From contig CDRNST010000213.1 in the NCBI GenBank assembly GCA_977016875.1, forward strand, positions 806,001-870,000: DNA of 64,000 nucleotides, given 5' to 3'. Source of the stretch: Pavona decussata (lineage: Eukaryota). The notes beneath the pieces are model-generated. The model saw only the letters and a list, made by a program, of their open reading frames with translations, was not told where the DNA came from and ran no database searches. Shown in pieces: positions 3,801 through 37,618 of this stretch. The position numbers and the translations under genes are program-made. Within the stretch, counting starts at the first letter, position 1. Each line of letters starts with the position of its first letter.

Positions 3801-5572
3801 GTCTCTGTCTCTTGAAATTTAGTTTAATTCTCGAAGTAATCACCATTTTTATTTACTCTTATGGAATTTAATTTCAATAGTTGTGGTTGAGCTAACGCTT
3901 TATTCGATAAAGTAAAACAGAATTCAAACTGACCTTTATAGCCGTCTTTCTACATAATAACTATAATAACTGAGTGAAATACAATAAGAAAGGAAATAAA
4001 TGCGAGATTCGATAATCACAGAGCTTCGTCCTATCAAGAAATGGTCCATTGTACCGGATCAAATTCGTCACCTCACTTGTAAACAGAAGTCTTTTGTTGT
4101 TTTGTGCGCTGAGGGACTTGTGCCGAGAATTGGCGAAGATGAGGTGATGATTATCGTAAAAATTCGAGGTGACAAATTAGCTGCATTAGGGTAGTGTGGC
4201 GCGGAAAGCTGCGTCGTTGTACATAATCGAATTTTACAGCAAAAATAGCAATCGGAGGGATCACAACTAACCAACTAACTCATTTGTATATATTTTGTTT
4301 GAAAAGAATCTAGAGGAACACCGCTCAGTATTTCATTTTCGGCCCGACTGTTGCCCCTCACCTCCGATTTCAGATCTTAGCAAACGTTCTTACCTCTCCG
4401 GTCGAAATCCATATTTTATCTTGTTCAGTTTGATCCAAAGTATTTTGGACGAGTCTATCAATCAAGGATTTCTGTTTTTGAGGCTTAATTCTTGTGACAT
4501 CGAGAACGCATTGCTTAACTGAAAGTTTGAAAACTATCGCCGATGGCGTCAGCTCTTGGCCTTTTTATCCACCTGTACTCTTATTGACAATAAATTAGCA
4601 GATTAATTATCAACTTTACAGGCGATATTAGCGTAAAATTAGTTAACTAAGTATGATATTTTTTCATAAGTACCTCTTGACAAAAGAAAATATTGGCATT
4701 GCCTTTTCAGTGAGGGGGAATCATGTTAAGTTCATTCTAAATGTTCTCTGATAACCAAGAATGACAACAATACGAGTGTCTACGCTCTTTGAAGCAGTGT
4801 CGACTTACCAGGTTAAGAAAATGCACATATTTAAGCGTGGACATTGAAATGCAAGTATAAAACTGAACAAGGACCCACCTAATTCATCAAGGTCGGCCTC
4901 ACTTTCATCTGATAAGTCGTTAATACCTTGATCCCCAGCAGAATTTAATTGTAGCAAGGCTGGCAGATTCAGTCCATTACCAACTAACTCCTGTTGCTCA
5001 ATATTTGGTTTAAGTGGAATAGAATCGTACTTTAACCTGTTAGGTCTCTTAAAAACATGCACATCAGTCGCCATGTTCCCTCCAACATTTCCAGGCAACT
5101 GCAATCGGTTTCTGTATATGTTTAAAGCAGGTAACAGTCTGGCCAGCTGAAGTCCGTATGGTAATCGTAGCGCCGCTGGGTTTTGAATCAACCCATTCGT
5201 CGTGGGAACCAAACCGGTGTATTGCGGAAGTTGTTGCAAAGCAGGAGCTAGCTGATAACCAGTAGCAAGCCTTGTTCCGTAAGGTACTGCTAGGGGGTTT
5301 ATTCCGAGAGCGGCGCGGTTAAGTCCTGCTAAAGCAGCCAGTGAAATACCACGGTTTTTCCGCGTTTTGACAAGGTGTTTGCCAGAAAGTTGTTTAGCGT
5401 TCTTATTGAACTTGTTGTTATCCTGTACAGTCCTGTTTTGGGGGACGATGTTTTTTGTTTTGGTAACGTTTCGTCCTCCTCCATGTTTATGCTTAGCGTT
5501 GTGTGCGATGACTTGTTGAACGACAATTACGAAAACAATCACAACCAAAAGACGCCCCAGCCCTTGACACAT
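847..5572 (-). CDS. Gene A: secreted protein with signal peptide, basic pro-region, Leu/Ala/Gly/Pro-rich block and one EGF-like domain
   Basis: Exon 1 is 5572-4879 ([23 protein letters not shown] signal; donor TTAG|GTGGGT, phase 1). The EGF exon is 1524-1417 (ctttag|...[35 protein letters not shown]|gtacaa; 108 bp, phase 1-1). The 3' end is uncertain: either exon 902-847 ([18 protein letters not shown]) or read-through to the stop at 1400. Confidence 0.75.
1970..2122 (+). mobile_element. Degenerate tRNA-derived SINE body, same family as the copies at 33396 and 35320
   Basis: Shares the pattern 'ggttctc...ttttct.ggtt.t.cggttttccct...ccaaattcca...gaagagccactctgtgga...ctgaaattc' with 35320-35510. 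Confidence 0.55.
2232..2432. repeat. Dispersed repeat; second copy at ~24803-25090
   Basis: Both copies share 'cacaagc.cgc.tt.gatatga.atgataga' and 'gctaagccaatcaaa...aattg.attat.caatgat.cagt.ttt'. Confidence 0.6.
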
Positions 5573-7012
5573 TGTCTACGATCATAGCCACATCCACATA
5601 ACACACCCAGGCTGGTTTAACCCATCTTGTTAATCGAAAATCTAATAAACTAAATGAATTATTTTCAGAGGCAAAACTAGACGACCTCGTTATTCACGTC
5701 GATGCAATTTTTCACTTCCAGTAATATTAAATTAACAAGTTTCTGGTTACATCATCTCTAAAGCAAATACTTCTTGAATGACGTAAAAGCTGAGATGTTT
5801 AAGGAGTTTTCATAGCACGACTTCGAAACACTATTTGCTCTTGCTAGTTTTTGGATTTATTGTCAGAAAGAAAGCGAAAATAGAAAAATAATTTATTTTT
5901 TAGACGCCGATCATTTTAATGTGTTCCACAAACTTTGACACTATACTGAAACACCTGCTAACCTGCCATGATTCGGTCAAGCCTTCTCACATCTCTTTTT
6001 ATTGCCCTTCTTAAATTACCAACTAGGTTGTTATCATATTGGGCTACTGTGTCGTAATTTTAAGCTTTATTTTATAATTTCCTGTATTGACTCTTAATCC
6101 TTTATTTCTGTCTTTAGAATTTTTTTTCAATCGTTCAATTGTTGGTATGAGGTACATCGTTATCTCTCGAATTCATATTTGATGGTAAATTTTCTCCTCT
6201 TGACTGGGTTTTTACCAAGGAAGCGTAGCACCATTTTTATTGTAAGTAAACAATGCTAACAAACCAGAACAATTATAGCAATTAAGGTTTTTTAATTCTG
6301 GACTTCCTTCAGATGTAACTTTGTTTACGAATCAAGCTCCTAAGCAAATAACTTTATTCACAAAAAGAGCGAAATTATTTCCTACACAGACTGCTCTAAC
6401 ATTTGGTAAACTAGGACCGCACAGAATACACACAAAATTTCCAAATTAATCGCTTCGTATAAACCTCTTGTTTGATTAATGTACCGTTTAAAACTCAGCC
6501 GTCTATAGAGTGCCTTTAGTCACAACTTTCAAGAGTCCAAACACGACAAATATGAAAGCTTTATTTGGAAAGACAACAAACACCAACGATGGCTTTTAAC
6601 GCGTTCCAGCTAAGTTGCACAAAAACCCACCCGTAAGATTTAGTGGGAATGTGGCAATAATCCTATTTCAGGGTGGTAAAAATACCACGAGGCGCAATTC
6701 AGTTGTTTCAGGACCGGAAACGATGTGAGTTGTAAAACACAGTCTGGGACAGCGGAATAAAATGAGGTCTGAGATACTACTCGTAATTCCTTGTTACAGA
6801 AACCGAACCAAACAACTTGGAAGGGTAAATAGTCTTTAAGTGCTACTTTATGTTGTGTAGATACTGTTGAAACTGAAATCTAAACTGTCACCTTCCCCCA
6901 GTCTGACCAAAGGTGATTCAACTTCTACAATTACATAGCCCTGGATATTTCATCAACATTACTAAACTACTTCTGCTAAAATGCGATTTCCAATCACAGT
7001 CTGTGACTGATT

Positions 7013-10808: not shown

Positions 10809-12874
10809 TTAGATGTTTGGTGCTCTTTGTCGTCGACTGTTATTTATTACTGTCCTTTTGGTCCCCATTTGATCACCAAAAGTACTTTTTTCAGAAGCTA
10901 TCAAGCTGGATTGGGAGGTTATTGTTTTTATTTTTCTCATTCTGCTTAGGTATTTCCTCTTATCCTGCAAAACTGGTGCTTGGTAACTTCCTCTTTCACG
11001 TTTGAAGAGTGTTGTGTCTTTCCTTTGTAAACAACACTCGTGATGACAGTAGTAAAGACAGTTAAATGGCCTGCATTCCGATGGACAGGGTACGTTAATG
11101 TTAAAAGGCGATGATCCCGCAGCTTGAGTTGAACTTGACAAACGAGCAGAGTGCTCCGAGGTTGCCCTGCAGCAAGGTTCGTCGCAATTAGGATAACATG
11201 ATCGTGAACATCCAGGATGGCAAACGGCAGCCGATGATAACAACGCAAAAGGTTGACGTTTTGGAACAGGTTGATTTTGCTTTCTTGTGGGATTTTCTGT
11301 TGGAAAATGCTTCTTAATGTCCGCTCTGCAGCAGCTAATCGTGCAAGCAGGGAAGCATTCGGAAACACAGCCACCAGGACATAGAGGCGCACTGGATTGT
11401 ACTTGTGAAGTAGCTAGTAGTTTTGATGGTGTTGGCGAATGCGATAACCGAGCGCAACATCCTGCAGGGCATGATGGCACACATTTGCCGTTACAACCTG
11501 CTGGACAATTGGGGTTGGAGGGTGTTGGTTGCTTAGCAAAGAAATTGTCGTATGATTGTTTAGCTTGCCCTTGTGCTGCTATTGGTTCCTTTGGCACTTC
11601 ACCTCTTCGACAACAGTTTTCTAAGCATTGAGGATAGCAGTAAGCTGGGCAACTGGCTGTGCAGGAAGCATGCGGCTTAGAGGGGACTACAGATGACGAA
11701 AGATGAGGTGGAGTTATCGGTGATGATTTTACAGTTTTAATTGGTTCTGTCGGACGTTTCGCTGCCACAGGTGGAATTTTACTCTTCGAACAACAATGCA
11801 TTGGGCAACTGTTAGAACAGAACCAAGAACAGGATGGTTGGCAATGTAATGGTGTACCGACTTTACTCAAAGTTGGTTTACTTGGTTTTTCACGACAGCA
11901 TCTTTGGGGACAAAGATGTGAGCATGTCCCATTGCAAAATTCAGGGCAAGTAATATTTGAATCCTTTGGACTTTCCGCAACACCTACTTGCTTGAAGATT
12001 ATATGCGTTTCCACGCCGAGATTTTTTGGCTTTGTGGGCTGAGCTCCCTTAACTTTATGATCGTCCATTTTTAAAGGAAACTTCTTATGCTTGGAGTCAT
12101 AGATATTACCATACATACTGTACATCATGTTTAAAAAGTTCATCATCCCGAACCAACTCATTGCGTTTCTAAAAAAGTCAGCGTTGTTTTTGCTTTCGCT
12201 TTTCAGGTGTTGAAAATCGGTTTCCTTGAAGGTTGTAGAAGTCGAATTTCGCTCACAACAAATGGGTGGACACTTGGAGTCACATTTGATTTTGCACGCC
12301 CTTGGACAAAACTTTTCTGCCATCGTTTTCATAAAACTCTCCTGAACTTTGGGGTCCAACATGGGAAATTGATTCTTCACTCCAGAAAGATAGCAACATG
12401 CTTTTGGACAGGATGGCTGACAGTTTGCCATACAGCTTACGGGACACTTTCCCAGACAACACCTAATGGAACAGGTATCTCGACACTCAGTTTTACAGTT
12501 GTCAGGACATCCTTCTTCCTCTGAGAGGGGTTTTGCTTCCGTTTCTGAAACTGCAAACCCACCTGACGGATTTTTCAAGTTTATAGCTTCTAGATTAGTT
12601 TCATCTGATTCGCTGGGTCGCTGTTGAAAGTCTGGTGCAAAGTTAGTTATAGCTTCACCCACTTTGACTATAGGTTTAAGGACAACTTCTGAAGGATGTG
12701 GACCGTGTTTGTTTTTTGGAGGAGGGGCATTGGGTGGTACGGTTATCTGTTGGGTATCTCCATCATTGTAATGAATCTTGAGCACTGGATGATGCTTGCA
12801 GCAGTTTGGTGGGCATCTGGCGTGACATGTCGTGGTGCATTGGATGGGGCAGTTCCTGTGTGTTATCTTATACG
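10809..12874 (-). CDS. Gene B terminal exon encoding 11 CxxxCxxxCxxxCxxxCC (minicollagen/NOWA-type) Cys-rich domains
   Basis: Acceptor tttaaacag at 12875. Examples: CPIQCTTTCHARCPPNCC, CPDNCKTECRDTCSIRCC, CPVSCMANCQPSCPKACC, CPAGCNGKCVPSCPAGCC. The last copy, CPSECRPFNCLYYCHHECC, has one extra residue. Confidence 0.9.
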
Positions 12875-15800
12875 CTGTTTAAAGAGAACGAAAATACCTA
12901 AAGTAAAATGTGTGAAGCTTGAAGACATACACAACAACGATGACATCTGCAGTATCAAATAGAGAATAACATGGGAGCTAAAACGGGATTCGACCTCGTT
13001 GCATTTATAATGCATATGCTACATCAACGTAGGTAATGACGCCGTCCCAAGAAAGAGATTATACCCACTGTCGGAAAAAAATAATGTGCACGGAAAATAT
13101 GGAACACAAGGGGAATTACAGTGTAACGAACTTAACCGGGACAACCGAAAAAACCGACACTTTGAAGTTTAAAGAAATGTTCTTGTTTTTGATTGGTTTA
13201 CAAACTACCAAAGCCGGACTCCTTTGTCGTAAACGTGACCTGTGATTGGCTGATCAATGTTGGGTGGCCCCGGTTGAGTTCGTTGCACTGTAATGACAAA
13301 TTTCAGCACAGTCAATTAAAACTAAAGGAAATTGGGGTGTTTGTTGTCCAAGGACAAGGAGTGATGCCTCTTCTAAGTGACTAGAGTAGGTGCTGAGAGC
13401 ACTTTTGTTTTGTTGCGTAAAACTGATAAGAAAAACAAATCGTTTTTTTACATTGTGAAGACTTCGATGTCATGTTATTCGGAGACATAGATAACATCAT
13501 TCCACCCGAATGTTTGTTCCCATTTAACTTTTAATGGACTGCAAGTCTTAGATTTTTTTGGGGATATATTTTAGATACTTGTGGGAAAGCCCTGCGTGCA
13601 TTATTCACAAATAATTGGTCAAATCATTTGGTAAATCATGGTCCGAAATCTTTGGAAATCAGCAGAAAAAATTATAAAAAAGTTGCGGTAGGAGAAAAGA
13701 GTACGGAGGAAGTATCATGCCTAGAAAACGAGCACGACCTCTACAAATAGGACTTTTAAGCACTTTTATGTATAAATTGAAGTTCCAATCGTTTGACCAG
13801 CGCGACCTTTGTATTGACCTAACATCGTTAGTTCACCAGGTTACCAAAAATATTGATCGGGCTTACGTGCGCATTCATATCCGTTGAAGTAATGATGATG
13901 GTCACATAGACAGAATCCTTTGATGCATTTTCCGTGCTGCTTGCACCCTGGCAGACAGGTATCAGCTGTTTAAAAATATAATAAAGGTACTCAGTGTAAC
14001 GGTGACCGGCTGACTGCTATCGAAATGAATGATCTCTATGAAAACTAAGCCCGTGGAAAGGTATAAGGTATATGAAGACGCATTGTAAAACAGCTAATAT
14101 GTTAACACAAAACTACCACATCATCCATCACCCATCACTTTTGGGCATCATTTTTTGGCATCGGTAGAAAAGCGTGGTTACTGTAAGAAAAAAAAGAAAA
14201 ACAATACTTACGGCGGCAGTCGAGTCCATCCCCTGTGTAACCGGGCTTACAAACACATTCTTTGTTGATGCATTTGGCATTGTAATGACATTCTTTACAT
14301 TCAATCCCTTGGGAATCTTCATCTGAAATAGAAACGAGATTACAGTTTGGAGAGAAATCAGGCATTTCGCTTTTAGATACGAGAGACCTTAAATTTTTTC
14401 TCAACCCTTTCACTGTCAGATTTTAATGAAAAATCTCATTTTGAAGCTTAAGCCACAAACGATATTTTGCGACTGTCACTTTGAAGTATCGTAGCCAAAC
14501 TTCCAAAACACTTTGTTCACATTCGAGGCAAGTATCTTAACGTCTTTATTTATGGTATACACAGAAAGTAAAATGTCTGTGCTTGGTGGTTCGAATGGGA
14601 TTCCAGTATACTTCCTTTGTGGGTTTCTTTTGCTTAACTGCTTCAAAAGTGGTCTGCTCTTCCTCTCTTACTGATTTTAACATGTTTTCGTAGATCTTTT
14701 CCCAGTACGTTAGTTTGAAACATCTGATCACGTTGGAAAGGATGATGATGATACAACCATGAGCATTCCCATAGAGTGCGCCTTAAATTGCTCATGAGCA
14801 ATTTGGCAAGAGTGCAACAAGGTACTTGGGATTGTATCACCTTCAAACTTTTTGCTGTAATGAGCAACACAGAATGCCTAGCTCTTAATACAAAAGCATT
14901 ATACTTGTAAGTTTAAAAAATCAGTTGTCTACAATACATAATTCAGATTTATTTAAATGGGGCCAGTCCAAACAAAGCACAGGCCTATATATATACTCAT
15001 AGAGCGCTACAAATAGGGAAGAATTGTAGAATATCCTTGAACAGGAGATACTCTCGCAATAAAACAAGTACAAGTTTAAACTGAACATCAGCACAATAGC
15101 TTTGCATGAATAGTTAAATTTTAATACAGTTACGATAAAACCCTTTCTTTGTAAAATCTTGATTTTGGTTAAGTTCATTTCTCAAACATTATTAAACATA
15201 CCATGCTCAAAAATGTCCATCGGCTAGATTTAGTTTGTATCCTTTTATTTTCACTTTAGTTAGCAAGCGTTATTGTGGTTAGAAATCTGAAACAAAAAAG
15301 GGGTAGTCTCGCTTGTATTGCAAAAAATGGTAAATTGAGCTTAAAAACCTTTTTTTAGAAAAAAACATCTTACTCTCTGCACAAAATGAAAATAAAGAAT
15401 TTCGTTTCAGTTAGCTCTAACTGAACATAACGTTTCGACTTTCGATTTCGACTGTTAACAGAGAAATAATCTTTGAGATTGAGCAGACTTCTTTTGAGAC
15501 TCATAACGTTAACTTAGATAAGTCACAATTTATGTTCAGGCGAAAATTGAAAAAATGATCATTACGCGTAAGATGTCACGATATGCATATTTAAGAATTT
15601 ACAGAATCAATGAAAACAGGTTTTGAATCCACACCGTTTTTCTTGAGAGAAATGTTGCCTGCCATTTAAAGTGGCTCGCTCAGGCTACCCAGTTCTGAAA
15701 GACACCTTCCAAGTACCTGACAACAATTTGATCGCAATAAATAACTTAACATGCCATTAGTTTCTGTAAAAGAGGTTCCTGTTCTCTTCTTAAAAATGAG

Positions 15801-18524
15801 ATTCAATTAGGTATTTACTTGAATAATATTGTTTTTGTCGTACAATGTAAACTGCCGCTTTCCCAGTACCTAGGGGTTAGTTGTTTTTATTTATTGGGTC
15901 AGTTTACCTTGCTCTGTTGTCTTTTTTTTCAAGAAGCGAGCACTTAACACAAAGAATTCGTTTTTGTGGTTTCTGGACCAGTGAAAAGGATTAGTCAAAC
16001 ACAGAACTCTTACTGAAGGAAGAAGATAAATTAGCATAATTAATTTCGAAGAAAGGACTCAGATCATGCATACCTGGCTCGGGACCAGAGAGAGCGGACA
16101 GTATATGGGCCAGCGGTTGATCATCGTTGATTATGCAGACTTTGTCTACGCATCTCGCATTGGGAGGGCATCCTTTACATCCCTTGACTGTGCATGCACA
16201 AAAGAAAACTCAATCACGGCTTCCACTATCCCTCGAAGGCAGATTAATGGTTAATGGTTAAGCTTTTTTATGAAATATTTATATTTTGAAATCTATAATT
16301 TAGCGCGAAATTTATCTCAAGTTATCCGTCGGGCATGTCTCACTTTCCAATACTGAAACAACCCACTAAGCTGATGGCCTGTTAAAATTCATTTATGAGT
16401 TTGTTAGATGATCACCAATAATTCTAAAGGGCGGCTATAATTCAGGCTTCTGATGTTAAATTGAACTGTCAATATTGTTTCGGTCTGGACAAATATGAAT
16501 TAGAACATTGTGTTTTAAATTATTCCTTGCTCGTACAGTCTTTTTTACAGATTTATATTATCTCTTCATTCAATTACCTCCATTATATATGCTCTTCATA
16601 ATCTAACGTGCCCTATTATTCGATTGTATTTAACTGTTGAACTGAGTGTTTTTTAACTTGAAATTTGTAGTTCTGCATTAGCTAGCTCACCTGCTGGTGG
16701 ACCATTCTTGTTTCCAATATTAATGATTTTGTAAGCGTCGTCCTCCATAGGTGGAACGTTCGGTTCGGAACTTTGGTGCTGAAATTGTTGTTGAACAAAG
16801 TTAAGTTCATTTTGACTCTCCGCAGACGTAGCACTTTGCAACTCTTGGTTTCCTTCAAATCCATTTGCCGCGTCATTTACTACCTGGTCATTCGAGGGAG
16901 CATATCCATTGACTTCATTTCCAGTTCCGGTCTGGATAGGATTACCGTTGTCATCTACAACAGAGGTATGATATCCAGTTGGGGAACTTATACTTCCCGC
17001 ACCCATAAAACCATTAGTGCCGCCTTTGGAATCTGGCTCGGGACCAGTGTTAATCGCATTTCCTCCTTCGGTGGCAGAGATAATTCTTTGACCATCTCCT
17101 CTGTCGCCATTGGTTTCCTGTGGTGAAAGAGGTGGTTCTTTGAGCGCTTCCTCGATTGATGAAGCATATTGAACACCAGGCTCAGGACTCTTATCGCCAA
17201 CTTCGTTGGACTGCTCATTCGTGTAACTAAGAGTTCCCTGACCTTGTTGTTCTGGGGCTGTTTGCTGACCCTCTGTACCAAACAAGCCGCCATATGAATT
17301 GGACGAAGTGGTCAGACTTTGTGAATCGTAAGATGTTCCGTCTGATGCTTGTGGTTCGTCTCCTGGCTGCTGTTGTTGTTGTTGTTGGTCTTCTTGCTGC
17401 TGCTGGTATTCCTGTGTTTGGTCTTGCTGCTGCTGAACAATGCCCTGTGATTGCTGCTGGTCAAGTTCTTGTTGCTGTTCTTGTTGAAAACCAGCTTGTT
17501 CAAAACTAGTTTGAGTTGGACCTTGTTCTTGGTCCCCTTGCCGTTGAACGCTCTCTTCCTGTCCTTGACCTGTCTGTTCACTCTGATATTGCAGCTGTCC
17601 ACCTTCAATCATTGGACTTTGCTGCCCTGCTAGTTCGCCTTCTTGGCTGTTTGGTGATGTACTGTCTTGGTCTTGTCCTGGTTCCTGTGGGTGCTGTGTG
17701 TACGCCGCTTGCTGTAACTGAATAGCTTGTTCAAGACTAGAGGGTTGCCCACCCTCACTTTGACCGGTATCTTCGTTATTACTGGTAGCGAAATTTGCCA
17801 CTGACGACTGGCTGTTTACTTGTTGATACGCTGTACCATCTTGAGGCGCTTCGAATTGCATCAAAGAATTACCATCACTTAATGGCTGCTGTTGTTGATC
17901 ATCATTTGACAATTCTTGGTTTGTTCGGTCAGTCTGTGGCGAATAATCTGTATTTGATTCATCTCCTCCAGTCATAATGGACTGGTAGTCGTCAGACTGT
18001 GATTGGAGGGAAGGCAATGATTGGAACAAAGCATATTTCTTGAAAACTTTTTTCTTTTTCTTTGCTGCATTGTCCTTGACTTGTAACTCATTATATCTTT
18101 TTCCTTGGGTCTTGGCATTTGTGAGATTTGATTTTTGAAAAGAAGTTGATTTAGTACCGATGGCTTTACCCCTTGGTCCCTCTTGAGAGAAATGTTTCTT
18201 TGAAATACCACCAACTAAGTCGAGATTGACATGTACCTTTTCCTCCTTCCCAGCGTGTCGATCTCCATACTCAGAGTTAATTGACGATGTTGCTTGTTTC
18301 TTCACCGTAGAACCACTATCTTTTGTCTTGTCGGTTACAATCCTTTCCGGTTTTAAATCCCTTTCTATTACGTTCTCTCTCCTGACAGTACTTAGTCGAG
18401 AGGATTTCCTTGGCTGCTTAACATGACTATTTGCTTGTTTTGTTTCGGCCCTACCAGTTGAATCAACAATGAACTGTAAAACACATAACATGAAAAGCGG
18501 ACCAAAATATCTAAAAACTTTCAT
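10809..18524 (-). CDS. Gene B: secreted ~1407-aa protein with signal peptide, basic pro-region, Gln/Glu/Ser-rich block, half-EGF, 2 EGF-like domains and 11 minicollagen-type Cys-rich domains (candidate cnidocyst structural protein)
   Basis: Exons 18524-16691, 16187-16074, 14322-14212, 13965-13867 and 12874-10809. All introns are GT-AG and phase 1; the total is 4224 nt and in frame. Signal MKVFRYFGPLFMLCVLQFIVDSTG. EGF-like ECKECHYNAKCINKECVCKPGYTGDGLDC and TCLPGCKQHGKCIKGFCLCDHHHYFNGYEC. Confidence 0.85.
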
Positions 18525-19545
18525 ATTTTGACTACATATCTTTTTTTCTGTTATGATAGTAAGACAATAACTCAATTAATAATACAAACAATTGCGCTCG
18601 CGAGCGAGGAATATAGGTAACATGAAAACAATTTGACCGCCAGTGGACCGTGCTTACTTCTCATTAAACAAACGGCAAGTTTAGTTTACAACCTGTTACG
18701 TTCTTCATTAAATAGCTCCTGATTGGACAAGCTAAAGTTTTAAGACAACACAAGCTGGTATTGCTGCCTTGCTCTAGTGCGTACGCACCCAATGTGTAAT
18801 TTCAAAGCGTGAAAAGAGTTTCTAATTCAGTGACTTGCCACAAATTTATATGCTCACAACGAATTACTGCTTCTTCTTCTTCCGATTGTCAGCAAATATT
18901 TACAAACAAATTGGGGAAGCCTTTTTTTCTTTTTCAAACCTAGATTTTTGATGAGCAAAAGCAATGTTTTTGTATTTTATAATGTTCAAGGTAAATATAA
19001 GGAGAGGAAAATAAAAACCTGCAAAATAAGGTAATAGCAGCAAGTAACAGAGCACGCTACGCATATCAAATTTGTGTGAATTTGAACATCAATAGATGCT
19101 TGAGCAACTGAAACCGGAAAGATACCAATTTCGTTTCAACTGACGTTTTTGTAGCTATTATTTTTTTCTTTTCATAACTAGATCTTAAATGAGGAAAAGC
19201 AGCTTTTCTTGTATTTTTTGTAGGGATCGAGATAAAGTATAAGTGAAGGAAAATAACATTTAACCTAAAAACTAAAACAATAGTAGACAAGCAACAGGGT
19301 ACTCTAGATAAATCAGATTTGGGTGAATTTGAATATCAATCGACGCTTGAGCAAGTGGTAGCTGAAACACCATTTTTTCCCTGTTAGACGGGAGGTGGCA
19401 GAGGGGGGTGGGCAGCCTGCATTTTAATATTTTGAACACAGCTCATTGCTCTCATTTGCCATTTGGATTTGGCTGTTTGTGTCATTTTATGAAAATAAAG
19501 CGTCGCTGTGTAGCCACTAGGAGCGTCATGCAAGAAGGTAATACA

Positions 19546-23117: not shown

Positions 23118-26100
23118 CTGCTTAGAAGAAAAAATGATTCATATCAATGTAAATGTTGGCATATTTGGTGGCAAACCAAAAATGTTCACACATTCTAGAG
23201 CATTACTTTATTTTTGGTTGGGCCTTGCATTGTTGTTTTCTGGAAGTGCTTAAGACTGAACTTGAACTGTAGTTTGTTAAGAGGTAATAGTAGCCTAAAA
23301 GTGGCATTAGAGTGAAGATACAATATATAAAAAAAAAATGATAATTTACTTACTTTAAATATGTTCAAATGACCACATACATGTACGAGATAATAAATCA
23401 AAGGATAACTTTCCTGAACCAAAAGAATGTTAAGCATTTCCGAATCGTCCTTGTAGGGTCAGGTGCTGTGAATTTGCTTCTAAGGTTTCATAATTTGTTG
23501 TGACGCTAGAGGTCATGTAGCGGTGATACGAATTGCTCCTAGTTATTCTCCTACTTTTACCTGACCACTGCTGTCCTCCTCTTGTAACTGAGCTGTCCTC
23601 AGGAAGAGGAAGTGCAAGCTTCGGTCCATGCTGCGATGCAGGTAAAGCTCGAACTGCTGTCTCGTTCGCTGCCACAGGTGAGAAACAAATGAATAATGAA
23701 AAGTTTATTCACCTGTCGATGATTTTAGCTAAACGGTAAGCTAATTGAGGACACCTATCTACTATAAACCAATCTAAGATACTACAATTATTAACAGTGT
23801 GTAGGAATAGATGTAAAAAATCTAAAATAAATGTGGATTATTCATAAGTTGAAGAATCTAAAAATACTAAAATTATTTACAATGCGTGGGAATAAAAGAA
23901 AGCAAGTATAAAACAAGTGCACAATATTCATCATCATATGATAAGATGCAGAGCTTACAGCAACTCACGATTGTGAGAGTAGCCTTAAACGTTGCCTTGA
24001 CAGTTGGAAATTCGTCAAAGGAGGAAGCTGGCAGGGAAGGGGTAGGGATTGGAAGGAGCCAATATGGGAGGCGGTAAGCCTTGGTTGTAACAATAACCTA
24101 TTTCCTGCTCAGGAGGAGGTGTTATCTTGCAGAGGTTGTTTGAAGTAAAATGTTCCACTGTAACAGTGGTAATTTAGTGGTTTCTAAAAGACGGTTAATA
24201 ATTTTAATTTCGTAGTTGACATTCTTACCTCTAGAGCAAAATATAGTGAATTTGATTTATTTAACATACGCCGGTTTTCTGATTACTGTCCTCAAATGTT
24301 TATATATTGTGAATTATATGAAAGTCGATGTGAAAGTGAGTTGTAAATGTAAAGTAAACGTTTCAGTCACAAAGATGTCACTTACAAGAATTTTAATCAA
24401 GGAGCCATTAAAAATATTTACTTACGAATGCAGGTGCGTCTACCAGCGTTGCCCATGTAATATCCAGGGTTACATACGCAAATATCACCACTGACAACAG
24501 TGGAATACTGGGGACATTTCACTTTGGGTTTTACTGCAAAAGAAAGTCGTAATAAATTCAATAGACAACAGCAGAACTGAGCTTGTTACTCAGTCTGGGT
24601 GTAATACCTTCGATCAAGAATTTCGTAGAGAGCTACCAAAGGGATGTAATTTATTTCACGTTAAACTATAAATTATTTTCTGCAGTGATATCCCTTTATA
24701 TTTTAAATGGAAGTGGACCATGTGAGGGTAATAAAAAATGACACCGCAGTTACCCATGCAAGGAATCAAGAACAAGAAATCTACCAACGAAGCTAAATAC
24801 CTGATTATAGCACAAGCGCGCTTTTGATATGAGATGATAGATAGCTAACGAGGCGTGTAGCACCGAGTTGGGTATAATCATCTCATATCCAGCAAGCGTG
24901 AGTGGAATAATTGTTTTTATCAATCAAGAACTACTGCTAGATCTTGCTGAATTCGCTTTGCAAGAACAACCAAAGGGCAACTAGTGGTTACTATCTCTCA
25001 GGCAAGGAATAAACGGCCCATATACCTTGGCCGCTAAGCCAATCAAACATCTGAAATTGCATTATACAATGATCCAGTTTTTAATAAATATACTTATATT
25101 TTTCAAACCACACCGCGAATTTCACATCTAATTTATCTTCACGAGTTTCTCCCGAATCATGTGAAATATTTCCATTACAATGTTTAGTATTGTTGACGCC
25201 ATGAATCTAGACGTAAATTTGTAACAATTTTGATTAATACTAAGGCGTGGTGATGAATACCTTTCTTGCAAGAAAATCCATCTCCTATATAACCTCTCCG
25301 GCAATAACATTTTCCATTTATGCATCGAGCATGGGAATCACATTCCGCACACATGTCCACTGTAAAGAAAAGACGACAGTGTCATTTACTACCAAAAAGT
25401 AACAAACTTTTGTTTTAGTAATTCAAACAAGGTAATTTTCATATTATTATGTTATGAAAAATCACGAAATATATGATGACGAATACACGGTGAAGGCTTC
25501 GTTCCAGTCACAACTAATATGTATCTGGTCTAACGTAAGCATTGATTTTTAAACGCACTGCACAACATTTAATTTTAGTGATAACGAATTTACGCTGAGA
25601 ATCCATTGCGTGCATTCCAGACAAATATTACCAGCAATTTTGATTACCTTGCGTTACAGGCGAGGAATTCGAGAAGAATCCAAAAGGGCTGTTTCGAAAG
25701 GGTAAATGATTGATTTTAAATGGCTATTTAATTTCTGCTTACCATCACAGAACCTTCCCTTAAACCGAGGATTGGGACAAATGCAGTCAAAATCCTGATT
25801 GACGCCTGTTTCTTTACAAATGCCTCCGTTAAGACATGGGTTGGGATGACACACTACTTTTGGTGGAGCTGCCACGTAACAAAAAAAAAATGAAACATGA
25901 TTAATGAACATAGTAACTTCGCAAAATAGCACAAAATAAACTGTTACTTATCTTGTTAGTTTTTAATCCTTAAAAGTAACAAGTCGCGCAGGAATTTGGA
26001 CAAAAGTTTGTTTTAAACGATTGGTTTTTGTGGTGTTACGATGGCGTAACCCGTTATGGCCTCAGTAGGGAAGGATTAAGGCTTGTAATATCATTTCGTT

Positions 26101-29100
26101 CGTGGCAAAGTTTGCAAATGTTGATTTCATTTTTATATTTCCGACAAATTGCAATTTTGACATTATGGACATCTACAGCATGCTTTTTAGCCCCTTAGAA
26201 GATTTCAGTCTTTCCTGGCAAAACATGCAGGGAACATATGTCAAGAACTACAAAGTACCAATATCAGATTTCACAAAAATTCATTGAATTTCTTGACATA
26301 CGTATACGACACCCAATCCTTTAGAATTCAGGCGAGGAGGCGATCTAAGGACCCTTTTATATGCACTCTTTTGATTAATTTTATAGGCTCTTAGTTTGTT
26401 TATGTCTCCAATGTGTGTTGCCATCATTAAAAAAAGTTATAGACTTTTTGTAGTAAGATTTGGTCATTAAGAACTTACCTGTTGTTGGTGTGGTTTTCTT
26501 CTCACATAGCCTGCCATGGGTGTTCTCAGGACAAACACAGAAAAAGGTGTCTTTTCCTTCAATACAAGCCGCTCCATTCAAGCATTTATTTGGAACACAG
26601 CTATTTGGGAGTTCGCTTGGAGATGGAGGAGCCCCTGAAAAAAACAAAAATTGATTGGCTTACACTAGGTTGTATTTCATATATATATATATAAAACATT
26701 TCGCGGTAACTGCCTTTTCTGTTGCAAAGTAAAGAGTATTTGTTTTCTAAAGTACAACCAAATGGCTGTTGACCAGTTTGTAAGCTGCACGGGAAGAAAG
26801 GTCCAATTCAGCCAATCGTTTTTTTCAATTAAAGCCTTCCACCCATGATGAAAGATTGATCTGAACTTCAAGATATTGAAAAGGGGAGGGAGAGGGAGGG
26901 CTCAAGTCACCCTTACGACAGAATGTCCCTCCACCTTTCAACATTTGAGTTTCAAAACAATTTAACGTATTTTATAGAGTAGACCAGCACTAAAATTTTA
27001 GGGAAAGGGGTGGGATATCATCCCGTTCTGTCTCAACCACTTTGACCAAGATTGTAGTAGTTTGAATTTCATATAAAAATCTTGTTCGAGTTTTCCCTTT
27101 ATTGACTTACTTGCTGGAGGTTTTGGCTCGTTGCATGTTATCCCGTCTCCAGTGTAAGGGGGTTTACATTTACAGATTCCTTTGTCGCAAAATGCGTGCT
27201 TCTTGTCACATTTATCACACTTGTTCTCTATAGGGTAAAAACATCAATGCGTTTATAAAAGAAAAATGTTTTAAACGCTAACCTCTTTGGAAACAAGCAA
27301 AACAAACAAATAAAAAAAGCGACAACAAAGTAAATAAAATTCTCTATCTTCTTTAAGGAAGGACTAACTTAAATACCATATTGTTGCTATGGAAAGTTCC
27401 AAATTGTCATATCTTGGAAACCCTAACTTTCAAAGAGAGGTTATTTGGACCATAGTTTTCTAAAAGATTTTAACTTATCGAGTCACAACCATATTTGGCA
27501 GAAAAAGAAAAAAAAAACCAGAAAAAGGCCTAAAACTCAAACGGCGTACGTTTGAAAAATGAAATCAGTGCCTATTGTAAAAGCTTACCAAGGTGCAAAA
27601 CGTGACCTACTGATTGCTCAAAATTTGAATTTTTATAGAATTTATGACGTCATAAGCAAGTATATTTATCCAATCTCGTTTGTAGCAACAACGAAAACAA
27701 TAAATAATGATGTCAGGTTATAAAGAAGGTCGTGACAAAAAATTGCACACAGCATAAGTTTTTCATATTATTTGTACGTCGCCTGGCTACGGTGTATAAT
27801 GCATATTTCCTTCAGCTTACCTGAACAGGTAGGGCCTTGATAAGGAACCGGACAAGAGCACTTTACTTCACCATTTGTGAATTCACATTTCCCGCCATTT
27901 TTACAGGGATCCCTGTTTACGCCGTCTTTTGGTAAACATGGATTATCAACTGAGGGAAAAAGAAATGATCACTAGTTAGCCATGACTGTTTCTCACCCTA
28001 CCGAGTCAGCAATGTCTAAACCAATCAACGTGTAAAAGACTAGATTATATCTATATCGTTGGCTTACTCAACCAATACCCTTGGTTAAATGCAGTTAAGG
28101 TTAATGTTTTGGTGAAACTGTTCGTAACATAACTTTAATTTAGTTCAACGATTGTTGATTTGTTTACAGGTAGCATATGTGTGCAATAATAAAGGAACTT
28201 TACTTACGAAGACAGCTTGGGCCTTCCCATGGTTCGTCGCAGTTGCATCGCGGTACGTTGTTCGTGACTTCACATCTTCCGCCATTATGACACTTGAAAT
28301 TGAAGCATGGATCATACTCTACAGGTAAACAAAACATGCTTGTTTCGAAAGGGTTTATCTAACCACCCCTTCTGAATGCAGTACTTAATTAACGAGTGTC
28401 GCTTGAAAAAAACCTGTTTAACCTTCACATTCTCAAAATTACGTTTGAAAAATCAAATTCAGTTGGGGCAAGCCTTACGTGAAGACACTACATCAACTGA
28501 TATTTCAAATCTCCGGCGAACCACTTAACATTATGGTGGAAAATATGTCATTGGCGAGTTTAATTGTCTGTCAGCACTTGCTGGAAGTGAGGGATGTGAT
28601 AACATATGAAGGTGATGGAAATAGGGTCCGCAGCAGTGGGGGAACAATGGTGACAGTGCTGGCAATTGTAATCTACCTTTAGCGTACTTCTGGTTCAAAT
28701 CTCCTCCTTACTCTTTGGAGTTTCTTTGGGTTCTCCGCTGTTCCTTCGCCATGGAACACCAAATTTTAACCTAAACTCTTACAGTTTATTAGCTTATGAT
28801 TGCTAAGTATTCACTCTCGTTTAACAAAGTCGATGGACTGATTTAAGTTACAGCATTTTTACACTAAATAGTACCGTGGCAGTGTCGTCCGTTGTAACCC
28901 TTTGCACACTCGCACCACCAATCTGGCTGATGTGGGTCAGTGGTTTCCTCCTCGCGGCACGTGCCACCATTCTCACACGGGTTTGGATGGCAGTGGGACA
29001 TTTCTATGAAATGTGCAAAGCAAAAGCTACGGTTACAATACAAGCTGAAATAATTTTGATCCCGCGTTGTTCTGTAAGTTTTGTGTCAGCTAGAAGCAGT

Positions 29101-32100
29101 GATTTGATATGAGTAACTGTAACCAGTAATTGTGTCTGCAAGGACGACCGTGACACAATAAAAGTACCGGATCCTGTAGTAAAGGATCTAATCAGCAACA
29201 AATTGTAGGAAAAATAATCCAAAAAGAGCAAGACTGTTAAATATTGGAAAAGTTTATTCTGACCGTGATATCAGTCTTTTTTAGATGATTTGATAGGAGT
29301 TGCACTAGGCTGTTTTAAAAGCTAGTAAGCTCGAGCGTACTCACGTGGACGACAGCTTTTCCCGTCACCAATGTATCCTGGCCTACATGAGCATTTACTA
29401 TAAATGCAAACAGCATGGCGGTGACAGCCATGACAACTACTTTCCTGAAAGAAATCTAAGACATAAAATTATTTTAAAACACCAAACTAACAGTGTAAGA
29501 ACCTAGAAGGAAAATATTTGAGTTTATGCTGAATGTTACACAATTGTTAATTATAATTCTTTCCATCTTCTGGTTGCTGGTTGCTCGGATCCTATCTTAA
29601 AAAATTTTTCATCGCCCCTTCTCTTTTAACTACAACTTACGCTCACAGCGGGATCCTGCTCGTCCTGCGGGACACAGACACGTATATTCCTCACCCTCCG
29701 GAATACAGTGTCCACCAAATAGGCAAGGGTTGGTTGGACCGCAAGGTAGACTAGAGAAAGAAATTGAGGCAAATCCTTTTTCTGCAAGGAAATAAAAATA
29801 AATTTGAGTCGTATTATTTTATATCATCGAACTAGCGTAGTTTCTGTATTGGAAAATATTGGCCAAGTTGTTTTCTTTTCACCATCGGCTTTCAAAACAA
29901 ACAAACAAACAAACAAACAAACAAACACACATTTAACGTGCTTTTAATTTAGCTGTAAAAGGTGGACTGTAAATAAAATGTAACCTGAGCAATACCTACT
30001 TGCGTACTAGTCAGATATTTGTCCGCAAGGTGGTTTTAAGTGTGGAGTCTGAGAATCAAATCCCTGAAGTGATGCCACTGACCAGTGAAGGATATTGCAT
30101 AACGAGTTTGTTATACTCTTATAATTGGTTGAAGCATTTGTGCCCGTGAACAAAATCGAATCCAAACAAACTTAATCAAGAAGTAAATTTACTGTCACAG
30201 ACTATCATTTTGTGCAACCTCGTAATTTAGGAATCTGTTTTGATGGCTGTGCCATATATGTGACTGTTAAAGGCCAACTTTCATACCTTCAGAATCGTTA
30301 TTCAACATGCATGCTCCTTGAATGCATGTCGATGGACTAGGACAGTTGTCGCATGCCGCCTCTTCTGTTTTCATGCAAACCGTGCATGCATTTTGCAAAA
30401 CAAAAAAGAGTACAATGAGAACAATGCGCAAATTATTAAAGCAAAGAAAGGCTACAACAATTAATGGCAGCTACTGTTTATTAGGCCAAGTTGAGAAACA
30501 GAGAAGGGAAACAAAGCATTTTCAACTTGGTCATTCAACTTTACTGCTTGTCATAAAATTGCAACGCTCCACTTTTACTATCATGGGAAAGGTGATTGGT
30601 TTCAATTATCCAAGTACTTTGGTTTCATTACTGGTATGACGTATAAGGAGTTGCTCTTTAATATAACAATAAATGCTTTTGTGAATTAAGTAATTTTCCG
30701 CCTTTAGTTCCCTCCCTACCCTCCTCTTTCCCCATGTCAATTTTATACTGCAATTACTTGAATTGGGGAAGGGAAGAGGTGAGCATAATGTCGTTGTCTT
30801 CTTTTTTTCAATTTTAGTGTACTTCTAAGTATTTCCGAATCTGATTGGCTTAGATTGATCACGCGACATGATAATCAGTTCAACCGCAGAGACATTACTA
30901 CCGTACTAATCGTTCGCGGAAACTACTCCATTTTATTTTCTAATGCATTAACAAAAAAAAATTTTTTTATTGTGTCTCTGGCTCGTATGTTGTTTATTCG
31001 TCTTTTCCATGTCGACCTTTCACCTTAAAGTTCGGACTGCCAGATTCAATAACTCGCGGAGAAAAAATTAGCTAGTGGTGGACGATAAAAACGAGTGCAG
31101 TTCGTGTTTACTGCGACTATCGAGCTGTAAGTTGCCTCTTGGAAATTTACTGTTCATTAAACATTAGCATATAAGTTATGAACATCATGCCGGCAAGTTC
31201 ATCAGTCGATGGTCCCTTGACAAAAACACTCTCTTGCTTAAATGCTTTCGTCTACTGTTGACAGAGGTCCGCAGGAATGAAATCTGGCCTTGTAACGGGT
31301 GACATATAAGAATATTAAAAGTGTCTTTTAAGGAAATATCATGATTCAGGGTATGGAATTATCCTGCTGTTACAGTTACAACCGTAATCACCTTCACATC
31401 CCAGTCCTGTGTATCCAGAGGTACAGTAACAGGAATATTTGGATGGATCGTAAATATCGGCGATACACGTAGCGCCATTATGACACGGATAGCTATCACA
31501 GGCTGTGCTTGTCTCCCTCACTAAAAGAATTTTGACCAAGGATATATCAAAATAGTGTTTATATATCATAAAATTCCGCTTTCATTAGGGTGTAAGCACA
31601 AAATACTGGCAGATTTAGATTGTGGAAACTGTTTCAAAATTATATTAAGTTGGATGTTGCTTTATTTTACCTTCACAATTTATTCCGTTGTAGCCATCTT
31701 TGCAATTACACTTGTAGCCAATAAGATTCTCAGTGCACACACCGCCATTTTTGCACGGGTTTACCGGTAGACATTTTGATTCCCCTGAAAATAAAGGAGA
31801 TATGTATACTTTAGGTAGTTGCTCCTATTATGTTAATCAGTGCTCTATAATAAGTTACAATAATTGTAACACGAAGAAAGTTCGCTTTTAATCACCGGAG
31901 GAAAAATTTTCATGTGCTAGAAAAATTAAATGCCAAATCAAAAGCATCAATAGTAAAATATTTGCGGGAGCTATGAATTTTATAGTATAATATGATTAGA
32001 TGTATTAATTTTCTTCCTTTTGTCTCTTGCTAATTAATCTTAAGAAACAATTAATTAAGATATAGATCCCAATTTACCTTCTGTCTTTTTAGCTCCTGTA

Positions 32101-35100: not shown

Positions 35101-37618
35101 CTAATAAACCGTAAACTCTTTCAACTTTATTCATTGATGCCATGAAGTGAGAACTAAATATTCAACAGTATACAAAATGCAATAAATAGCAATTTTCTTT
35201 CCTTTTTGTGTTCTGGTAATAACTTCCTTGAAATATATTACAATATTGCCTCCTCAACACATCACTAGCATGAAATAGGAGCCAGGGGGGGGGGGGGGGG
35301 GGGAAGGGGGCGCAGATGCTCTCGCTTCACACCAATATGGCCCATATGTGGAATGAGTTTGTTTTTGGTTCTCGTCCCTGCTCCGAGGGTTTTTCTCGGG
35401 GTTCTCCTGTTTGGCTTTCTCCTCAAAACCAACATTCAAAAACCAAAATCCAATTCGACGTGGAAACAGTGGATGAAAGATCCATTCTCTGGAAGCCCCT
35501 GAAATTCACATTTATTATTTCTAAATAGACTGAAGTCGGCCATTATATAGCGCATGAAGGGAAATAGATAGTCAAGGATGGATAACGTTTTCAGGTTTCA
35601 ACGAACAACCTGGATGAGAAATCTTCACGCAGAACAGGGTTGTGGGAAGGGGGTATCGCCTGAAGTGGAGTTCATGGTAGAAGGGCTCTTTTAATGTCGC
35701 ACCTACTTTCTGGAACAATTTGCCGGACGATGTAAGGTCCTTGGCTGACTTGGAGCTAGGTTAAGAGGCTCTTTCTAGGCATTCTTTTTAAATCGTAATT
35801 AATGGAGTTTTAGTCCGATCTTAGCTAGCGCTGTTTCTACTATGTAGAAACAGCGCTGCATAAGTTATTATTATTATTGTTGTTATTCAGTATTTTATAA
35901 TATATTATCCCAATAGTCCTAATTCATATTTTCAAACATTGATATATAAAAAAAAGTTCTTTGACCTTGACACCTATCTCCCTTGTATCCAACTGGACAG
36001 ATGCATCTAAACTCGTTAACCACTGCTGTGCATGTACCTCCATTTCTGCACGGGTTGACGCCGCAAGGATCGATCGCTAAAAAAGGGTGAAAGTAATCAG
36101 TGATTCACACCTGCGGTTCCCAAGTTTACGGCGAGGTAAAACTATTCGCAATCCTTGGTCTGCACAGTATTAAGAAAAAGAAAAAATAACCCCGTAAAAT
36201 GCTGATTAGTAGCAACTGGGGCTTAACGAACAGCCTTCATTAAGATCTGAACATCAATGAGCTATTCAAGGTTCGTAACAGGCTAACAAGGAAAACCCGT
36301 ATAGCCCTTTGTTTTAATTTCATTATTTTTACTGAACATTTTCTTACTCCTTGATACCTTTGCAAGCTTGAACATGGTTATATGCGAGAACACCCTTTTT
36401 CAAGTGCCACGTTTCCACCTTGCTTGCTCGTTACCGCTAACACTCAAACGTACCTGGCGCAGAGAAGTCTCCGTGATGAACAATAACAAACGGTGGAGGT
36501 CTTGGTATCATGACTGGAACTGGTACTCTCTGCGGTGGTAATGGTAGTGGCTGGCGCAAAACAACAATCCTAGAGGGCCCGGGTATAGGCATTGAGAAAG
36601 GATTCTGGAAAGGTCTTTTCACAACGATGATATGCTGCCTGTGATGAGGAAGTCGCTGAGAAAGAGGCTGAGGTCCTACCTCAAAGTGTCTTTCTTGTGC
36701 CGTCATTCCTCTGTTATCCGCTGAACTCTGACCAGCATTTACTAGTGCATCATTGGCTCCTTTAAAGATCACGGGCGAAGAAAGGTATCTGTGAATCGGT
36801 GGACTAGGATATCGGTGCTCAGCTGGCAAGAACTTGTGCACAGCAGGAGCATAAAAGTGGGATGGATGAAAGGCCCGTATTTCAGAGTTCGACGCTACCG
36901 GATCTGCGAAAAAGTTATCAGGATTTGTAGCTAGCCGCATCTCCTCATCAGAAGTTACTTGGTTATTACCGTTGTCTAGATAGTTTGGGCTGTCATTTTT
37001 GGTAAATCTTTCGGAGATCCGCTGCCGTTTTATTTCCGCGGGCACAGTCCTGCTGGCAGATTTTTTCAAGGTACTTTGTTTTGTAGTAAACCTATCACGT
37101 TGAGATTCCGTCTTCCGATGGTGAGATAGTTGTGATTTTAACCTTACTCTGTTTCGAGATCTTTTAATTAAGCCGTCATCCGACTCCTCTAAACTGTTCC
37201 CTTCCCAGCGTCCATTCTGTTTTAGTTCTTTTACGGGATCTGAAATTACATTCCGTCGTTGGTTTAAGCCATGTTGTATTTCATGTTGCAGCTGCAAAGA
37301 CTGTGCTTTTGATTTACCATCTGTAGGGAAGCGTGTCACAATTATTTCCCTAGGAACGTCAATTTTGTTCTTGAAGCTGGTTTTAAAGTCACCTCTTTTC
37401 TTCAGTTTGAAACCATGTTTATTTCTCGCCGAATACTCCGAAGAATGTTTCTTAAAACTGTTTTGTTTTTGCCTTGATTGTAACGATTTCGTGATGATGT
37501 TATGATGACGGTCTTTTGACATCCCCTTTGTCTTTTTAAGTAGAGTCATTTCCACAGAACCGACGAAGAGGACACAAGCTAGTGAGAGTAGAACTCTAGC
37601 CCAAGTCTTGATCTCCAT
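22801..37618 (-). CDS. Gene C: secreted ~1156-aa multi-EGF protein with signal peptide, basic pro-region, His/Pro-rich block, 14 EGF, two 4-Cys half-EGF modules and a C-terminal WSC-like domain
   Basis: 19 exons, all GT-AG phase 1: 37618-36454, 36076-35966, 34817-34707, 34379-34269, 31784-31671, 31520-31392, 30364-30287, 29781-29641, 29455-29345, 29003-28875, 28318-28208, 27949-27821, 27227-27111, 26634-26479, 25868-25743, 25359-25261, 24533-24426, 23668-23561, 23117-22801. The total is 3471 nt and in frame. Signal [23 protein letters not shown]. No transmembrane segment seen. Confidence 0.85.
29896..29925. repeat. (AAAC)n microsatellite
   Basis: Direct reading. Confidence 0.9.
32094..32502. 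mobile_element. MITE-like element with inverted ends and internal gggcgc(t/c)tattcga repeats
   Basis: Ends t(a)ttcgattaaccgccc / gggcgtttaatcgact. Several gggcgcttattcgagg-type units inside. Confidence 0.65.
33004..33075 (-). tRNA. tRNA-Thr(AGT)-like sequence, probably a tRNA-derived repeat or pseudogene, in a ~260-bp tandem unit; partial second copy at 33221-33316
   Basis: The minus strand reads TCTCCTG-TAGCTCAGTGGTAGAGC-ATCCGAA-CTAGTAA-TCGGA-AGGTC-TCAGGTTCGACTCTTGA-TAGGAGC. It has A and B boxes and an AGT anticodon but imperfect stems. The flank 'agtaaatgaca.agg.atactcggaaaaaaatcc' is duplicated. Confidence 0.5.
33396..33516 (+). mobile_element. 5' part of a tRNA-derived SINE
   Basis: ggggagtagggatggcacagtgatgatagaactcgcctcccaccaatgtagcccggttcgattcccgg has Pol III A/B-box-like motifs. 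The body resembles 35320-35510. Confidence 0.7.
33517..34042 (+). mobile_element. Penelope-like retroelement 3' fragment (GIY-YIG C-terminal region plus pLTR with a degenerate hammerhead at 33917-33963)
   Basis: The translation [39 protein letters not shown]...PLNR fits the 'AEH...H.IDW...R...E' tail of Penelope GIY-YIG endonucleases. The downstream part is homologous to 8176-8493. Confidence 0.8.
35320..35510 (+). mobile_element. tRNA-derived SINE, internally deleted, preceded by a poly-G tract
   Basis: ctcgcttcaccaatatggccc...gagtttg...ggttctcgtccctgctccgagggtttttctcggggttctcc matches the SINE at 33396. Confidence 0.65.
35676..35890 (+). mobile_element. LINE (CR1/L2-like) 3' end remnant
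   Basis: Encodes an [13 protein letters not shown]-like RT C-terminal motif, followed by a stem-loop (agcgctgtttctac-tat-gtagaaacagcgct) and a (tta)n tail. Confidence 0.5.

Follow-up and report, generated by a model that had tools for sequence, protein, structure and literature searches.

What kind of protein could join a long glutamine-rich disordered segment to small EGF-like modules and a dense array of six-cysteine domains, and do these parts belong to one gene at all? The question is raised by a stretch of 64,000 nucleotides from Pavona decussata (assembly GCA_977016875.1, contig CDRNST010000213.1, positions 806,001 to 870,000 of the forward strand), here called the window, in which such parts follow one another on the minus strand from position 18524 to position 10809. 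Judged from its sequence, this locus (Gene B) is one real gene of five exons that codes for a large secreted protein, and it is a single-copy member of a small anthozoan family whose named members come from stony corals and sea anemones only. The Cys-rich domains of the predicted protein are, by sequence, of the minicollagen/NOWA type. With a probability of about 0.62, the product acts as a multivalent cross-linker that joins the cnidocyst polymer by disulfides and bears a disordered polyanionic arm.

Gene structure and family

Two long open frames on the minus strand (18575-16653 and 12878-10812) enclose three short Cys-containing open segments. Together these make up five exons separated by four introns, all GT-AG and all in phase 1, and the joined frame comprises 1407 codons with one terminal stop. 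The ATG at 18524 and the stop at 10809-10811 reproduce exactly the extent (10809-18524) that an earlier note on this DNA had assigned to the gene. The joined frame served only to check reading frame, splice dinucleotides and junction residues, and the Pfam, PDB and representative-protein searches reported here were run exon by exon. Comparison by blastn with a related coral contig (L001) returned six blocks, which correspond to the five exons and to approximately 340 nt upstream of the ATG, and none in the introns. Between Pavona and L001, the ratio of nonsynonymous to synonymous substitution (dN/dS) was 0.24 in exon 1 and 0.17 in exon 5, which indicates purifying selection.

Four annotated models in other species are regarded as orthologues: LOC116613828 of Nematostella vectensis (1348 amino acids), LOC116304487 of Actinia tenebrosa (1046 amino acids) and LOC111347648 of Stylophora pistillata (1178 amino acids), all three named as uncharacterized, and a Montipora capricornis model (P0053, 836 amino acids) named "probable serine/threonine-protein kinase fhkB". 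These have in common with Gene B the module order (disordered half, 4-Cys module, EGF, EGF, Cys-rich array), the exon junctions, a Met-rich motif, a terminal variant domain and the charge blocks of the disordered half. The junction residues of the Stylophora and Montipora models match the prediction of the splice model, and Actinia and Nematostella have the same junctions with substitutions. The exon order is also kept in three further genomic lineages. The database names are misleading, with "kinase fhkB" being wrong because it stems from a Gln-rich low-complexity match. A second S. pistillata entry (PFX12157.1, or P0002; 1029 amino acids) is named "Protocadherin Fat 4, partial", which is likewise wrong because it reflects EGF exons; it joins exons of the upstream EGF gene (those at window positions ~28304-26480) to Gene B-type exons 3 and 5 and is best read as a fused gene prediction.

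The proposal that the Gln-rich, EGF and Cys-rich parts lie in one gene is therefore borne out by the phase-1 GT-AG introns, by conservation confined to exons and by joined models in four other species. It is very improbable that the Gln-rich exon and the Cys-rich exon derive from different genes or transcripts, so that their union would be an annotation artefact. Such a separation could draw on the exon 1 frame, which if unspliced could stop 13 codons past the donor, and on the fused Stylophora model, in which the Cys-rich exon is linked to exons of the upstream EGF gene. Against this, four independent annotated models, albeit computational ones, link both parts at the same junctions, the phases are compatible throughout, the exon order is kept in at least seven lineages and the 5' end of exon 5 offers neither a start codon nor a signal peptide. 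The short Logan and ENA contigs are genomic, with the intron retained, and are not transcripts.

The family is small. Exon 5 is 73% identical to family member P0001 and 55% identical to the Stylophora protein, and Gene B is present as a single copy in its own 602-Mb assembly. A HMMER search of 1.84 billion representative proteins with exon 5 matched 12 proteins, with a few more recovered by word searches; no medusozoan protein and no NOWA-named protein occurred among these 12 matches. Members have ~7-11 Cys-rich domains each, and their alignment revealed invariant cysteines in several domains, an invariant Met/aromatic motif and a highly conserved terminal variant domain. The features that define the family (module order, Met-rich motif and terminal variant domain) are all present in Gene B. 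The accessions and gene identifiers of the orthologues were not found in the literature searched, and the supplements of the Nematostella matrisome paper contained no peptide or name matching the family. Since no paper searched contains these identifiers and the names given in the databases are either empty or incorrect, the architecture is undescribed in that literature. The view that this domain combination does not correspond to a described protein thus holds for the literature searched, though not for RefSeq, which already has the combination from Nematostella, Actinia, Stylophora and Montipora. Two candidates from published work were also considered. NVE17236, a "derived NOWA" (Sunagar 2018), was ruled out as the Nematostella family member, as it carries a C-type lectin domain, and a tentacle-enriched "Protocadherin Fat 4" of Fimbriaphyllia could not be tied to the family.

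The Cys-rich array and the modules before it

Exon 5 contains, in a single frame, 10 exact CX3CX3CX3CX3CC units and one terminal CX3CX4CX3CX3CC variant, and the count of 11 Cys-rich domains in the earlier note stands on these terms. All 66 cysteines of the exon fall inside the 11 units, and a six-frame translation of the window placed the canonical motif in exon 5 only. The linkers between the domains measure 3-102 amino acids, and the description of them as rich in Pro, Ser and Lys agrees with the composition of the exon as a whole, linkers included (P 10.8%, S 10.0% and K 8.4%). As had been noted, no Gly-X-Y collagen is encoded, with no run of four or more triplets in exons 1 or 5. When exon 5 was compared with all PDB sequences, the sole match was a Cys-rich domain of Hydra NOWA. 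A profile built from the 11 units and run against the whole PDB ranked the NOWA domains 2hm3-2hm6 best (E 8.7e-6 to 1e-4), followed by the minicollagen-1 domains 1sp7 and 1sop (E ~2e-3), and the next match was an unrelated non-cnidarian sequence at E 8. Because the profile matches with E < 0.01 are only NOWA and minicollagen domains, the 11 units can be assigned by sequence to the minicollagen/NOWA type, in line with the original identification. The C_tripleX family of Pfam, proposed as a check on that identification, gave no match in exon 5; in exons 1 and 5, Pfam returned no family at E values up to 1, and the full Nematostella orthologue behaved likewise. A feature search of the ESM Atlas with exon 5 produced no usable match.

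Between domains 4 and 5 lies a Cys-free motif rich in Met and aromatic residues. At five of its positions (W241, M244, M245, Y252 and Y255), the residue varies little or not at all across 10 family members, and residues 241-259 are predicted to form a helix by AlphaFold2 (AF2). The AF2 model of exon 5, computed from a 10-sequence family alignment, is a beads-on-a-string arrangement of small, moderately confident knots and disordered linkers, with a mean predicted local distance difference test score (pLDDT) of 40.7.

The N-terminal half of the protein, encoded by exon 1, is predicted to begin with a signal peptide and continues with a basic and then an acidic block (Table 1). The earlier note had described about 300 residues of Gln-rich sequence; the Gln-rich acidic block is real, but it is ~440 residues long and is preceded by the basic block. 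Its composition is dominated by Q (19.6%), S (10.9%), G (10.9%) and E (8.7%), with 1.1% Met, and it has no internal protein repeat, the sole tandem DNA repeat being a poly-Gln tract. The identity of exon 1 is 60% to the open reading frame of L001 and 51% to the Montipora model, and small conserved islands within the disordered half include the K-rich polybasic motif and the D-D-x-Y-K-I-I-N-I end. An acidic block of the same kind is present in the Nematostella orthologue (G 17%, Q 15%, net -50), whose polybasic motif is reduced to a K-K-Y remnant at the boundary between the basic and acidic blocks. A BLASTP comparison between exon 1 and the N-terminal half of the Nematostella protein returned nothing significant, with composition and organization alone in common. 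The coral and Nematostella disordered halves are unalignable, yet both are basic and then acidic, such that it is the charge blocks that are conserved.

The three small exons had been described as EGF-like, and this applies to two of them to differing degrees. Exon 3 barely exceeds the Pfam EGF cut-off (PF00008, 21.8 bits against 21.5; EGF_3, 25.9 bits), and exon 4 is EGF-like but falls below the cut-off (EGF_Tenascin, 19.8 bits against 25), which its Nematostella counterpart passes at 26.8 bits. Exon 2 is a four-Cys unit followed by a hydrophobic-acidic motif, without a Pfam match for either; relative to L001, no part of the gene is better conserved (89.8% nucleotide identity, blastn), and its amino acid identity to Nematostella is 76%. 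The upstream tandem neighbor, "Gene C" (window 24421-31824, minus strand), has many single-EGF exons, among them a 4-Cys module and a compact EGF of the CxxC type that are similar to exons 2 and 3 of Gene B.

Table 1. Positions within the window of the exons, protein regions and Cys-rich domains of Gene B
Feature	Window position	Strand	Basis
Upstream region (promoter / 5' untranslated region), conserved	18525..18866	-	blastn block 18866-18274 vs L001, 73% identity, reaching 340 nt beyond the ATG
Exon 1: signal peptide, basic block and acidic Gln/Ser/Gly-rich Cys-free block, 611 codons + 1 base	18524-16691	-	Open frame from ATG, GT donor after 16691
Predicted signal peptide, residues 1-24	18453..18524	-	Hydrophobic N-terminus; same place in L001, L004 and Nematostella
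Basic block, residues 25-172 (~150 amino acids), K 16.9%, net +20	18009..18452	-	Composition
Polybasic motif K5-V-F-K-K-Y, ending the basic block	18033-18062	-	Conserved in L001, L004 and Montipora
Acidic disordered block, residues 173-611 (~440 amino acids), net -58, no Cys	16692..18008	-	Composition
Exon 2: 4-Cys module, then I-I-N-D-D-x-P-L-A-x-I-L-x-A-L-S-G	16187-16074	-	AG/GT, phase 1-1
Exon 3: six-Cys EGF-like module	14322-14212	-	AG/GT, phase 1-1
Exon 4: six-Cys tenascin/teneurin-type EGF-like module	13965-13867	-	AG/GT, phase 1-1
Exon 5: 11 Cys-rich domains in Pro/Ser/Lys-rich linkers, 687 codons + stop, net +37	12874-10809	-	
Cys-rich domain 1	12798..12851	-	Motif
Cys-rich domain 2	12456..12509	-	Motif
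Cys-rich domain 3, 3 residues past domain 2	12393..12446	-	Motif
Cys-rich domain 4, family-invariant C..C..C..CPP.CC, predicted helix before it	12255..12308	-	Motif, family alignment, AF2
Met/aromatic-rich Cys-free motif F-R-N-A-M-S-W-F-G-M-M-N-F-L-N-M-M-Y..., predicted helix	12105..12173	-	Alignment, AF2
Cys-rich domain 5	11895..11948	-	Motif
Cys-rich domain 6, Cys invariant in family	11790..11843	-	Motif, alignment
Cys-rich domain 7	11610..11663	-	Motif
Cys-rich domain 8, aligns to solved Hydra NOWA domain 2hm4	11454..11507	-	12/18 identical, E 0.0025
Cys-rich domain 9	11328..11381	-	Motif
Cys-rich domain 10, Cys invariant in family	11169..11222	-	Motif, alignment
Cys-rich domain 11, variant CX3CX4CX3CX3CC (C-P-x-E-C-R-P-F-N-C-L-x-Y-C-H-H-x-C-C-L), most conserved unit of the family	11031..11087	-	Motif, alignment

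Known cnidocyst proteins and the probable role of Gene B

Domains of this type have a well-described function. Exchange of intramolecular for intermolecular disulfides between minicollagen-type domains builds the polymer of the nematocyst capsule (PMC4863159), and NOWA and Cnidoin join the minicollagen network through such Cys-rich domains (PMC4863159, PMC4321713). Expression of the Nematostella minicollagens, without exception, and of the minicollagen-like NvNCol-7 is restricted to cnidocytes (PMC12549020). The described carriers of the domain that were found (minicollagens, NOWA, Cnidoin and CPP-1) are all cnidocyst components.

Gene B is none of the first three. It resembles NOWA (known from Hydra, and as NvNOWA-1 to -4 from Nematostella) in being non-collagenous and secreted and in having a C-terminal tandem array of six-Cys domains (8 in Hydra, 11 in Gene B), which are N-type in NOWA and predicted to be N-type in Gene B. 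Unlike NOWA, it has a basic and acidic disordered N-terminal half, EGF modules, long linkers and a Met-rich helix, and Pfam detected neither an SCP/CAP nor a C-type lectin domain in exons 1 and 5; it is because both of these domains are absent that Gene B is not considered a NOWA. With the minicollagens (NCol) it has in common the CX3CX3CX3CX3CC domain and Pro-rich linkers. A minicollagen is built around a central short collagen triple helix of ~12-16 Gly-X-Y repeats, and Gene B is no minicollagen because it lacks a collagen part; in addition, it has 11 domains as opposed to one per end and is about ten times larger. The resemblance to Hydra Cnidoin consists of a Gln/Gly-rich disordered region combined with Cys-rich domains and a long N-terminal region past the signal peptide. 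Cnidoin is characterized by a repetitive elastic domain rich in Gly, Gln, Met and Cys, with a GxGQQ motif, a QMQGCGQQxP repeat and 17% Met, and by a long N-terminal pro-region (PMC4321713). When compared through this published motif, and not by alignment, the block of Gene B is acidic, Cys-free, Met-poor and without GxGQQ. Further, Cnidoin has a Cys-rich domain at each end of its elastic domain, whereas all 11 domains of Gene B are C-terminal to the disordered block. As repeat type, composition and domain placement all differ, Gene B is not Cnidoin. Cnidoin itself went undetected in a coral transcriptome or genome (PMC7430897); spinalin is likewise missing from corals.

If Gene B is a cross-linker of the cnidocyst polymer, its protein would enter the post-Golgi cnidocyst vesicle of developing stinging cells, where the 11 domains would swap internal for intermolecular disulfides with minicollagens and NOWA-like proteins. 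Each molecule could thereby form a node with many covalent links in the polymer of the capsule or tubule, like NOWA in Hydra, and we infer from the domain type that the protein is produced in cnidocytes and located in the capsule or tubule. The fold type of such a domain is set by a Val or Ile at position 4 together with a Pro at position 14, both of which the highly reactive C-type fold requires (PMC4863159). None of the 10 canonical units carries both residues of this C-type pair; therefore N-type domains that form a single link each are expected, with valency arising from their number. The acidic arm would stay tethered as a polyanion that binds cations or water, or would act as a spacer, and is not expected to work as a silk-like spring. 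By analogy with the long pro-region of Cnidoin, the basic block may serve as a pro-region, masking the acidic arm until cleavage at the polybasic motif.

Two other functions have to be weighed against this role in the cnidocyst. It is possible, though unlikely, that the protein is instead a secreted, disulfide-cross-linked matrix protein outside the cnidocysts (in mucus, mesoglea, an epithelial coat or the skeletal organic matrix of corals), with the six-Cys domains reused as a general polymerization module. An acidic block and EGF modules, as in Gene B, typify extracellular matrix and the acid-rich skeletal proteins of corals, and the neighboring gene is an ordinary EGF-repeat gene with exon types in common with Gene B. 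The tentacle enrichment of the "Protocadherin Fat 4" gene in Fimbriaphyllia is a mere lead in the same direction, as that name is given to many EGF genes. Conversely, the family also occurs in Nematostella and Actinia, anemones that have no skeleton, and both the described carriers and the PDB matches at E < 0.01 point without exception to cnidocyst or nematocyst proteins. Less probable still is a Cnidoin-like elastomer, also suggested in the earlier note, in which the Gln-rich block would store elastic energy and release it at discharge while the Cys-rich domains anchor it to the wall. This would account for the attachment of a long, disordered, Gln/Gly-rich and Cys-free block to Cys-rich domains, somewhat as in Cnidoin, with its Gly/Gln-rich region joined to Cys-rich domains and its long N-terminal pro-region. 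The suggestion does not fit the block itself, which has neither the GxGQQ nor the QMQGCGQQxP repeat, no Cys and 1.1% Met as opposed to the 17% of Cnidoin. The block is also strongly charged (net -58), and not hydrophobic or silk-like, with no repeat beyond the poly-Gln tract in the DNA. Finally, the Cys-rich domains are on one side only; therefore the arm is tethered at one end and would bear no load between two anchors.

Several points count against the preferred reading of a cross-linker of the cnidocyst polymer. The assignment to the cnidocyst is guilt by domain, and the role suggested for the acidic arm is conjecture. The mean pLDDT of 40.7 is low enough that the AF2 model provides no structural confirmation of the fold of the Cys-rich domains. 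The rule for positions 4 and 14 comes from work on Hydra domains and may not hold elsewhere, and the annotations in which the exons are joined are computational predictions. Additionally, no acidic propeptide of the minicollagen type, ending in Lys-Arg, was clearly recognized in the N-terminal half, where only the polybasic motif is found.

Surroundings and significance

Several other features of the window, all on the minus strand where a gene is concerned, provide the setting of Gene B. A single-exon open frame of 400 amino acids at 45118-46317 matches the rhodopsin family of seven-transmembrane receptors (PF00001, E 1.3e-17). "Gene D" (55428-57287) is a 620-amino-acid open frame with a hydrophobic N-terminus, His-rich stretches and many repeats of the V-P-Y/F-P-V-P-x-P-S-P-P type, for which Pfam returned no family. 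Two further open frames, at 36440-37663 and 4808-5575, have signal-peptide-like starts and no Pfam family, and the former is basic and has a Pro/Val-rich C-terminus. Lineage-specific secreted proteins may be clustered in the window, all of them encoded on the minus strand. At 60447-60675, a stretch of 229 N marks an assembly gap or a mask.

The findings for Gene B do not overturn current views, but they do correct the misleading database names "Protocadherin Fat 4" and "kinase fhkB" and flag one fused gene model. Molecular knowledge of how stinging capsules are constructed comes nearly all from Hydra, and to our knowledge only minicollagens and NOWA-like genes have been named so far in anthozoans. 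As a conserved single-copy gene with 11 predicted cross-linking domains and a polyanionic arm, Gene B is a testable candidate for an anthozoan-specific component of the capsule wall or tubule, and an orthologue exists in the genetically tractable Nematostella. Spirocysts are cnidae found only in hexacorals, and the pressure of the capsule is built by a soluble polyanion matrix. A tentative and rather doubtful extension is that hexacorals alone possess the family as a component of the capsule wall, which would bind a long, disordered polyanionic arm covalently to the minicollagen network as a wall-anchored counterpart of that soluble matrix, or which would be specific to spirocysts. Should this be the case, the family would give anthozoans a solution of their own to the mechanical problem that is thought to be solved by Cnidoin in Hydra.

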